Below, in pieces: positions 1-3,000 of a stretch of DNA of 64,000 nucleotides; within the stretch, counting starts at the first letter, position 1; every line of letters begins with the position of its first letter. Source of the DNA: Macrostomum lignano (taxonomy: Eukaryota); contig NIVC01001916.1 of the NCBI GenBank assembly GCA_002269645.1, forward strand, positions 158,048 to 222,047. The letters run 5' to 3'. The notes under the pieces were generated by a model. It worked only from the letters and a program-made list of their open reading frames with translations. It made no database searches and was not told the origin of the DNA. The position numbers and the translations under genes were made by a program.

Positions 1-3000
1 TGCACGCCTCATCACGCCGGTGCCCGTGTCCGTGGTGCAGCTGGTCCTCGAAGCGTTCGTCGATCCGGTCGCAGATCTTGTACAGATCTTCCAGTCTGCG
101 CAATTTGGGAAAAAATCAAATTTTCAGATGTAGAAACTATATTCTACATATTCTACATGTTTAAAATCGGTTAGCAAAGCAAATAAGTAAAGCAAGACGG
201 CAAGTTAATTTACTACTGTTATTAGATGTATACTACTTTCAGTAGCAGAAGTAGAAAAAGCTTTTTGTTTTAAATCTAATGTTTAGAGTTGGTTATGTCT
301 CGTAAGTCACCGCACAGCTGGTGAGTTGTTTGTTTCCTTGGCAACCAACCCATCGCAGATTCCTGTCATTCGATTGCTGATTTCTAATCGAACTTCTTCG
401 TCGCGTCTTCGATGCACCCGGATGAGGCAGTGGGCGGCGAAATTGCGCAGCTCATCCTGACTCAGAGCTTTGTCCTCCTGATTGGCTGCGGTGCCGGGTG
501 GGGGGCTCAGGTGTGCTGTTTCTGTCTGTCAGCCTGTCCGCCTGTCTGTCTGTCTGTCTGTCTGTGTGTCTGTCTGTCTGTCTGTCTGTCTGTCAGCCTG
601 TCCGCCTGTCTGTCTGTCTGTCTGTCTGTGTGTCTGTCTGTCTGTCTGTCTGTCTGTCTGTCTGTCTGTCTGTCTGTCTGTCTGTCTGTCTGTCTGTCTG
701 TCTGTCTGTCTGTCTGTCTGTCTGTCTGTCTGTCTGTCTGTCTGTCTGTCTGTCTGTCTGTCTGTCTGTCTGTCTGTCTGTCTGTCTGTCTGTCTGTCTG
801 TCTGTCTGTCTGTCTGTCTGTCTGTCTGTCTGTCTGTCTGTCTGTCTGTCTGTCTGTCTGTCTGTCTGTCTGTCTGTCTGTCTGTCTGTCTGTCTGTCTG
901 TCTGTCTGTCTGTCACCGGTGATAAAAAACGCATAGCAGGGATGAAACAAAGGCAAAAAGGAAAGTGTTTAACACCACCAGAATATCTAAAAAAGAGAGC
1001 ATTACAACACATATAGCAGGTAACTGTGACGGATACTAGCAAAGAATTAAAAAGAAACATTGTAATTGCAAAAGTCAACAATTTCTAGGAAAGGAACTAG
1101 AGAAGAGGATAGAAAAGAAAAGTTCGCATGAAGGCAGGTCACGATCGCCTGTCAGACCTGTTCACCACAGCTGTCACTCGGACGTCGAGAGTCTGGGACT
1201 CCTTGGCCTTCAGTTGAGCCATCAAGCGCCGCGTCATCTCCATTTCAAAGGTCGCGAGTTCGTTCTTGATGCCAATCAAAATTGGCACTGAGATGTTTTT
1301 AACAGGCAATGTAGGAAAATGTTGTTTTTATTTATGGGAACTTATGTGGCATGGCTGTTGAAATTGTTTAGATCTCAGGTTTAAATTGTGTAGATCTCAG
1401 GTTTAAATTGTCTAGATCTCAGGTTTAAATTGTCTAGATCTCAGGTTTAAGTTGTGTAGATCTCAAGTTTAAATTGTGTAGATCTCAGGTTTAAATTGTG
1501 TAGATCTCAGGTTTAAATTGCGTAGATCTCAGGTTTAAATTGTGTAGATCTCAGGTTTAAATTGTCTAGATCTCAGGTTTAAATTGTGTAGATCTCAGGT
1601 TTAAATTGTGTAGATCTCAGGTTTAAATTGTGTAGATCTCAGGTTTAAATTGTCTAGATCTCAGGTTTAAATTGTCTAGATCTCAGGTTTAAATTGTGTA
1701 GATCTCAGGTTTAAATTGTGTAGATCTCAGGTTTAAATTGTGTAGATCTGAGATTTAAATTGTGTAAATCCATTGGATTAAAAATCACATACAACCAAGG
1801 CACGACCATTAGAATAATGTAAAATTTAATAACCATAATCAAAATCAAGATTTGTCATGACAGGTTGGAAAGAAAGGCAGATTTCAAGATCTGACTCACC
1901 TTCATCTGGTTTCTTTTTGCAGGAAATCTTGTTAAACAGCATCCTGCCAAAGATGAAGAAGTCCTCGAAGACCACGAACGGCAGGGCCAACACGGGTTTG
2001 TTGTGGTACTCTTGCACTAGAAAGTACATGTTGTACTTCCAGATTTCAATAGCATTTCTCTCAATCTCTTCAAATATGTTGCTGCAGGATGTGATGTTTT
2101 AAACGGAGCATGCTTGTTAAACGGATTGTAGAAAATTAGAACAATTCAACACTTGAAAAATTTACCTGAATATGGCAATCAGCAGATTCAGTAGCAGGAT
2201 GTCCACCACCATAAGGTACACGGCTAGCAGAATAAGGACCAAGGCACCGGCCGTAGGGCAGGGGTTGCCCTGGTCATCCACAGTGCTGTTGCCACTGCAA
2301 CCGCTCGGTGGGTCCGCTGAAAGTTTTGAGCAGAGTTTCTGTGAAGTTGACTAGCTTACAGGTAACATCTGTGTCTAACAGGGCACAGCTGTGTCTAACA
2401 GGTAACAGCTGTGTCTAACAGGTAACAGCCGTGTCTAACAGGTAACAGCTGTGTCTAACAGGGCACAGCTGTGTCTAACAGGTATCTGCCGTGTCTAACA
2501 GGTAACAGCTGTGTCTAACAGGTAACAGCCGTGTCTAACAGGTAACAGCTGTGTCTAACAGGGCACAGCTGTGTCTAACAGGTATCTGCCGTGTCTAACA
2601 GGTAACAGCGTGTCTAACATGTAACAACCGTGTCTAACGGATATATCTGCCGTGTCTAACAGGTAACAGCCGTGTCTAACAGGTATCAGCCGTGTCTAAC
2701 AGGTAACAGCCGTGTCTAAAAGGTAACAGCCGTGTCTAACAGGTATCAGCCGTGTCTAACAGGTAAGAGCCGTGTCTAACAGGTAACACCCGTGTCTAAC
2801 AGGTAGCAGCCGTGTCTAACAGGTATCAGCCGTGTCTAACAAGTATCAGCCGTGTCTAACAGGTATCTGCCGTGTCGAACAGGTATCTGACGTGTCTAAC
2901 AGGTAACAGACGTGTCTAACAGGTAACAGCCGTGTCTAACATGTAACAACCGTGTCTAACAGGTATCAGCCGTGTCTAACAGGTAAGAGCCGTGTCTAAC

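Follow-up and report, generated by a model that had tools for sequence, protein, structure and literature searches.

The stretch of DNA studied here, a 64-kb window of Macrostomum lignano contig NIVC01001916.1 (referred to throughout as the window), carries on its minus strand a gene that its domain content identifies as a TRPM channel gene. Two short exons of this gene, designated A and B, lie one after the other between the exon encoding the TRP box and the exon in which the pole helix begins. We consider it fairly probable that the two are mutually exclusive exons, derived from the ancient tandem duplication of a single exon at this position.

Reading frame of the alternative exons

Translation was used to check five successive pieces of exon (Table 1). 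The coordinates, lengths, phases and peptides given for A and B in a preliminary description of this DNA proved correct throughout when the translations and splice sites were read. Its statements on the frame were also confirmed by translation: either exon alone joins the TRP-box exon to the pole-helix exon in frame, and when A and B are both included through the acceptor at 485 the frame is lost, with 11 residues of B followed by a stop 34 nucleotides (nt) into that exon. Omission of both exons likewise shifts the frame. As both exons have phase 1 at their start and phase 2 at their end, with lengths of 1 mod 3, the use of both or of neither breaks the frame. A and B thus have sequence features of an exclusive exon pair, being neighbouring exons of close lengths (130 and 136 nt) and the same phase, 672 nt apart, of which the use of both or neither disrupts the frame except through a start at 505. 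This last site, a poor TGAG acceptor that had been placed near 508, is indeed present, with its AG at 507-506. All acceptors and donors of these exons have the AG and GT dinucleotides.

Homology of exons A and B to the TRPM rib helix

In TRPM3, the rib helix comprises 30 residues (1163-1192 of the rabbit protein) and connects the TRP helix with the coiled coil (PMC12819145). To compare A and B with this part of the family, a profile was made from the ungapped alignment of the 37 residues preceding the exon boundary in 20 TRPMs of other animals (trematodes, a nemertean, molluscs, echinoderms, a hemichordate, shrimp, and vertebrate TRPM2/3/5). A and B were scored in the register fixed by their own donors, and the background consisted of every 37-mer without a stop in the six reading frames of the window (34,814 in all). 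The score of A was 31.8, as compared to -18.7 +/- 7.7 for its shuffled versions (z=6.6), and the score of B was 6.6, as compared to -28.8 +/- 8.1 (z=4.4). Among the 37-mers of the window, A ranked first and B second. The earlier claim that the two exons align without gaps to one donor position is borne out by these scores, as both fit the TRPM rib-helix segment in the same register. In pairwise comparisons with the outgroup helices, A scored 31-61 against most of them and B from -13 to 33.

Several individual positions agree with this assignment. A and B have in common the family positions L4, F7, a basic residue at 30 (R30) and a hydrophobic residue at 31. Counted back from the junction, positions -3, -6 and -10 are hydrophobic (V, V and L in A; I, M and I in B) and extend the heptad pattern L+1, L+4, I+11 and F+15 of the pole exon, a continuity that is expected if A and B each directly abut the pole exon. 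In addition, the split last codon of A (AG/A, with the slash marking the splice junction) yields the R/K found there in 18 of the 20 other TRPMs.

Against the structures in PDB, the product with exon A alone (isoform A) was best aligned to the Nematostella TRPM2-like channel (6co7; 2.8e-21, query 12-157), and the product with exon B alone (isoform B) to TRPM3/TRPM1 (1.3e-18, query 9-162). Each alternative exon contributed about 9-10 bits over the other isoform with the same PDB target. Exon B was aligned to a 30-residue stretch of mouse TRPM3 with 11 acidic residues, which, by count from the alignment, corresponds to the rib helix of rabbit TRPM3 at residues 1163-1192 (PMC12819145). The proposal that the swapped segment leads into the pole coiled coil is upheld by this alignment and by the register common to A and B, the segment being made up of the rib helix and the opening heptads of the pole helix. 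Together, these comparisons argue that A and B are homologous exons encoding the same structural element. No third copy was found in the 64-kb window. RelB matches of the exon B peptide in PDB (E about 0.1) were set aside as due to chance only.

A paralogue with both segments

Four more M. lignano proteins (P0002, P0003, P0004 and P0042) represent copies of a paralogue whose identity to the window gene is about 58% over this region. In P0003, an A-like segment, RLLASFRHELMVFESEMARRLMAMLKAKQSQTLEMRVKTVTNR, is followed by a B-like segment, GESGRLSQREEADLRNFTTHCLSLVNTRQELETKGRIEQRIQSIYSG, the same order as in the window gene. When these paralogue segments (parA and parB) were compared in register over 37 residues, A was identical to parA at 24/37 positions and B to parB at 14/37, as compared to 6/37 for A and B and 3/37 for A and parB. 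In a tblastn search of the window, P0003 found exon A at 1309-1157 (E=1.4e-9) and exon B at 477-346 (E=1e-3), and exon B matched P0002 with a phmmer value of 8.1e-5.

An old exon duplication, as had been suggested, is therefore supported by the retention of both segments in the same order in a paralogue of this divergence. Since A is nearer to parA and B nearer to parB than A is to B, the exon duplication precedes the gene duplication and is older than the split of the two M. lignano TRPM genes. In either gene, both exons are inferred to be under purifying selection: their frames are open, their length class and phase are kept and they can be aligned at this divergence, which argues against a neutral relic.

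The two segment types also differ in character. The isoelectric points are 9.7 for A and 11.4 for parA, and 6.1 for B and 5.7 for parB, and cysteines are present in the B type (two in exon B) and absent from the A type. Exon A is net basic (7 K+R, 5 D+E) and Met-rich; exon B is roughly neutral to acidic (8 K+R, 9 D+E) and hydrophilic, with an RRR cluster. By its scores against the outgroup helices, A is the conservative copy, and B is the divergent, faster-evolving one; the contrast in character is repeated in the paralogue.

The models of the paralogue are inconsistent, containing B only, both segments, or a frameshift.

Table 1. Exons and introns of the TRPM gene around exons A and B; the slash in a splice site marks the junction
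Feature	Position	Strand	Length	Details
S6 exon	2166..2316	-		Donor CAG/GTAAAT; Pfam Ion_trans match; junction at 2316 taken from A0A1I8H0Q3
TRP-box exon	1900..2081	-	182 nt	Ends ...KKKPDE plus one base, phase 1; strong donor AAG/GTGAGT; aligns with the TRP domain of solved TRPMs
Intron, TRP-box exon to exon A	1288..1899	-	612 nt	414 nt are a 22-nt tandem repeat x18.8 at 1357-1770
Exon A	1158..1287	-	130 nt	Phase 1 in, 2 out; 44-residue peptide; acceptor ...catctcag/TG; weak donor CAG/GTCTGA
Intron, exon A to exon B	486..1157	-	672 nt	394 nt are a (GACA)n microsatellite, x98, at 521-914; holds the alternative acceptor TGAG/
Exon B	350..485	-	136 nt	Phase 1 in, 2 out; 46-residue peptide; C-rich acceptor ccccccacccggcaccgcag/CC; weak donor GG/GTTGGT
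Intron, exon B to pole-helix exon	96..349	-	254 nt	
Pole-helix (coiled-coil) exon, start only	1..95	-		Acceptor ttgcgcag/AC; continues past the window edge

One exon at a time or both together

Given that both exons are coding and constrained, only two arrangements keep the frame: the use of one exon at a time, or the use of both through the start at 505. The first is favoured at both ends of the exons. The 5' end of each matches the phase of the TRP-exon donor, and the 3' ends of A and B keep a heptad pattern and a boundary residue that are sensible only beside the pole exon. It is also favoured by the P0002 model, in which the B-like segment stands directly between the TRP exon and the pole exon.

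A number of observations weigh against exclusive use and need to be considered together. The direct similarity between A and B is weak, with 6/44 identities and an ungapped in-register score at p ~0.006 by shuffling, and a gapped alignment of the two reached no significance. Neither the exon A peptide nor the exon B peptide, when searched alone against PDB, matched a TRPM. Single-sequence AlphaFold models of both isoforms gave a helix, a short break within the alternative exon and another helix, at low confidence (pLDDT, the model's own per-residue confidence score, about 45-50). The donors of A and B (GTCTGA and GTTGGT) are non-consensus at +3, breaking the purine rule at this position, and the firmly supported donors of the gene are of the GTGAG- or GTAAA-type. 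Other in-frame donors are available at 1143 (ATC/GTGACC, lengthening A by 5 residues) and at 311 (GCG/GTGACT, lengthening B by 13 residues). No RNA-derived protein of this gene was among the protein-search matches. Joining A to B through the start at 505 keeps the frame open and adds a linker of 7 residues, SPPPGTA, and P0003 joins its A-like and B-like segments in tandem by way of a 24-residue linker. Finally, the P0002 model may be as unsupported as P0003.

The donors at 1143 and 311 were rejected, as their use disrupts the ungapped alignment to the paralogue, to Schistosoma japonicum and to the 20 other TRPMs. Homology thus provides indirect support for the donors at 1158 and 350. The weakness of both alternative donors relative to the other donors of the gene is a pattern that fits a regulated choice between the two exons.

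Apart from exclusive use, it is conceivable, though unlikely, that A alone makes the working channel, and that B is rare, limited to certain cell types or stages, or regulatory, its co-inclusion with A leading to a stop and less channel. A has much the higher profile score and the better pairwise scores, and is the better conserved in the paralogue; the donor of B looks the weaker of the two, and A plus B through the normal sites gives the early stop that such regulation would use. However, a pure poison exon needs no conserved coding frame, whereas in B the frame is still open and the length class is kept, together with L4, F7, R30, the hydrophobic residue at 31 and the heptad register. The acidic, Cys-containing character of the B type is conserved in both paralogues, and the P0002 model uses the B-like exon alone.

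Rather less probable is the inclusion of both exons in one mRNA through the start at 505, which would place two tandem rib-helix-like segments with a short linker before the pole helix. Such an arrangement would account for the open A+B product and for the tandem segments of P0003. However, P0003 begins with translated intronic tandem repeats and looks like an ab initio, untrustworthy model, and the two linkers (7 and 24 residues) are unrelated, showing no similarity. The splice sites also favour the use of one exon at a time: the acceptor at 485 has a proper, C-rich pyrimidine tract, but the AG at 507-506 is preceded by the purine-rich sequence gacagacagaaacagcacacctgag, and the TGAG lies about 20 nt upstream of the 485 acceptor, a typical distance for a branch site, which it may represent. 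The heptad pattern and the conserved terminal R of A are kept only if A is joined to the pole exon, and S. japonicum and all other TRPMs inspected have a single rib helix.

That one of A and B is no real exon, but an open frame arisen by chance, or the decaying remnant of a duplication, with splice-like dinucleotides kept by accident, is very improbable: the weak similarity between A and B, the failure of either peptide alone to match TRPMs in PDB, a UniProt model of the locus that uses neither exon and the two weak donors might suggest it, but it is largely refuted by the profile ranks (first and second of 34,814, with an independent profile) and by the in-register comparison, in which both exons are recognizable in the paralogue, and the TRP exon does not join the pole exon in frame unless A or B is used.

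Possible mechanisms of exclusive splicing

Known mechanisms of exclusive splicing were considered in relation to the exclusive use of A and B. Steric hindrance requires that the branch point of the second exon be no more than about 50-60 nt from the donor of the first; here the intron between A and B is 672 nt long, and still about 280 nt when the microsatellite is disregarded. In the type that depends on the incompatibility of U2 and U12 splice sites, one of the introns has a U12 donor (/RTATCCTT). No U12 sites were found among the donors (GTGAGT, GTCTGA and GTTGGT), and the acceptors are AG with pyrimidine tracts. In the Dscam type, docking and selector elements that are complementary to each other lie in the introns, upstream of each variant exon. 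Pairing between the intron RNAs at this locus, looked for in this one species, gave no duplex beyond those of shuffled sequences (z at least -0.25), and this also speaks against exclusive use. The inverted repeats in the window from 1 to 2200 are four in number and short.

One of these inverted repeats, 17 nt long with 14/17 positions complementary, pairs 83-99 (at the acceptor of the pole exon) with 1877-1893 (at the start of the intron after the TRP exon). It includes the palindrome AGATCT, present also in the 22-nt repeat, and is probably due to chance; a genuine pairing would place both A and B in the loop. The introns near A and B consist mostly of tandem repeat, and a 20-nt unit is repeated x22 at 2358-2800, upstream of the S6 exon. 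With repeats subtracted, the introns around A and B and before the S6 exon are only about 200-280 nt long.

Comparison with trematodes

The preliminary description had proposed that both exons be sought in other species. In the S. japonicum homologue P0164, there is one exon only at this site, a 357-nt exon between the TRP and pole exons, and an A-like exon could not be detected in the 3.6-kb upstream intron of this locus. The exon boundaries are the same as those of M. lignano (...NVKN / ...QLKDR/LEEIYS), and the last 40 or so residues of the S. japonicum exon form the rib helix (F/L-E-A-N-C...). The comparison indicates that: the exon boundaries are ancient; and, on present evidence, the doubling either is confined to the Macrostomum lineage or has been lost from trematodes. 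The S. japonicum gene thus differs from that of M. lignano in having, instead of a pair, a single exon with a long N-terminal extension. The schistosome TRPMs (S. japonicum P0164, S. haematobium P0049 and S. mansoni A0A5K4FBQ8) have an F-x-x-x-C pattern in the rib helix that is shared with exon B.

The trematode exon (S. japonicum L001 11661-12017; P0049, P0163-P0165 and P0018) also carries, ahead of the rib helix, a motif, DDGA[KR]LFKFTER / DNGAELFAFTKSK, that is conserved from Schistosoma to Dicrocoelium. Because of a faint likeness to the start of exon A (L..F.....RR), this motif was considered as a relic of exon A, but the likeness is too weak, and the motif and the B-like helix share one exon. 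The notion that B is of a trematode type and A of a mollusc type, prompted by a match of parB to Dicrocoelium P0018 (E=5.7e-4), was also discarded, as schistosome helices are no nearer to B than to A by their in-register scores.

Identity and annotation of the gene

The joined translation of the TRP-box exon, A, B and the pole exon was used as the query in a HMMER search of 1.84 billion representative proteins, giving 963 matches. The best of these, P0001 (UniRef A0A1I8H0Q3), is an M. lignano protein that could be placed by tblastn, exon by exon and with 96-100% identity, on the window from 13701 to 1895 of the minus strand. It carries the Pfam domains LSDAT_euk (7e-44), TRPM2-like (2.2e-15) and Ion_trans. 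In PDB, S6, the TRP box and then the rib-helix region are aligned with solved TRPM2/3/5/8 structures (E down to 2.8e-21). From LSDAT_euk, the TRPM2-like domain and the TRPM matches in PDB, we take the gene to be a TRPM channel gene. Pfam TRPM_tetra was absent from the matches; the coiled coil itself and the 3' end of the gene lie past the window edge. The introns of the gene are of the GT-AG type and are rich in tandem repeats.

A0A1I8H0Q3 contains neither exon A nor exon B: its ...KKKPDE runs straight into the tail GHLRWVGLPRKQYKFTSF, and this 18-residue end is spurious. The same model omits coding stretches that are backed by the paralogue, for example around 5835-5503 and 3290-3097. An annotation correction is thus called for, as the UniProt model of the gene misses the entire rib helix and the models of the paralogue are inconsistent with each other.

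Other features of the window

On the plus strand, an open frame of 382 codons at 60094-61239 matches Pfam Ion_trans weakly (6.4e-6, over residues 204-336) and contains an S6-like segment, LVLNFIIALLVSAMNEV; it had no sequence match in PDB. Possibly it belongs to a second TRP-like channel gene, encoded on the opposite strand. Long open frames at 54025-56431 (minus strand) and 57899-58948 (plus strand), of 467, 184, 152 and 350 amino acids, had no Pfam match at E<=0.01. Frames at 19565-20431 on the minus strand appear transposase-like by eye, yet had no Pfam match. The regions 16000-18200 and 24000-26200 have opposite, extreme GC skews (-0.80 and +0.76) with long open frames derived from repeats, and look like an inverted pair of minisatellite arrays.

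Discussion

Exclusive pairs of homologous exons that arose by tandem duplication are commonplace in ion-channel genes, as in the voltage-gated Na+ and Ca2+ channels and in the flip/flop exons of AMPA receptors. Exons A and B are like these pairs in that they are adjacent, nearly equal in length, identical in phase, related by descent and encode the same structural element, and in that the frame is lost when both or neither are used. They are unlike them in their position, at the TRPM rib helix and the entry to the pole helix, and in being very divergent (6/44 identities), and their exclusivity is a prediction from sequence.

If exclusive use is correct, the following course of events may be proposed. 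An ancestral exon, whose product runs from the linker behind the TRP domain through the rib helix into the first pole-helix heptads, would have been duplicated in tandem to give A and B. Each mRNA would then run from the TRP exon through A to the pole exon, or from the TRP exon through B to the pole exon. An mRNA with both exons would have its stop well upstream of the last junction, and would probably be subject to decay or encode a truncated channel. The reading frame would thus be the minimum enforcer of exclusivity, and the choice of exon would presumably be regulated through the two weak donors. The outcome would be two channel subunits, identical save for about 45 residues. Most likely, the swap would shift the set-point of gating or the coupling between the cytosolic domain and the pore, and it might perhaps affect coiled-coil pairing too.

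The expected effect on gating can be related to TRPM3, in which the rib helix holds the MHR1/2 domain of the neighbouring subunit by charge, and heat and agonist both break this contact (PMC12819145). Mutations neutralizing the contact between the rib helix and MHR1/2 were made as a test (PMC12819145). As this contact acts as a switch in TRPM3, an exchange of A for B would be expected to alter the corresponding interface. The charges are not the same, however: the TRPM3 rib helix sets 11 acidic residues against a basic loop, whereas in the flatworm exon A is net basic and exon B is roughly neutral to acidic with its RRR cluster. Somewhat unlikely, though worth stating, is the possibility that A and B are an ancient switch older than the split of the paralogues, in which the exchange of the first heptads and of the rib helix, the contact that in TRPM3 keeps the cytosolic domain at rest, would set two activation thresholds, or would keep the A-type and B-type subunits of the paralogues apart, in different tetramers.

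According to the preliminary description, no case of this kind had been described in TRPM channels. For the rib helix this stands in the literature searched: no exclusive exon pair at this position was found in full text, and the matches concerned alternative first exons in an insect TRPM, a different TRP gene, or generic method text. For TRPM genes at large it needs qualifying, since an equal-length swap elsewhere in the protein separates two RefSeq isoforms of a TRPM8-like gene, the species being probably the scallop Argopecten. These isoforms, X1 and X2 (XP_069140028.1 and XP_069140029.1; P0162 and P0008), are both of 1444 amino acids and differ only at residues 809-855, with 28 substitutions. 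Situated some 250 residues to the N-terminal side of the TRP box, and apparently before the first transmembrane helices, the block is not the rib helix. Known from the protein isoforms alone, the swap has the signature of an exclusive exon pair, and it suggests that pairs that look exclusive are already present, unremarked, in the annotation of invertebrate TRPMs. Among the isoform pairs of other invertebrate TRPMs that were inspected, none differed at the rib helix.

A natural swap of the rib helix, with segments of opposite charge character that were kept through a gene duplication, provides a ready pair of constructs for work on gating and on the mixing of subunits. If A and B are indeed used one at a time, the TRPM family would join the ion-channel families that have been diversified by exclusive exons; if they are not, the result is an annotation fix. 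In the former case, M. lignano would offer an exchange of the rib helix that has been tested by evolution, in an animal that is tractable to transgenesis.

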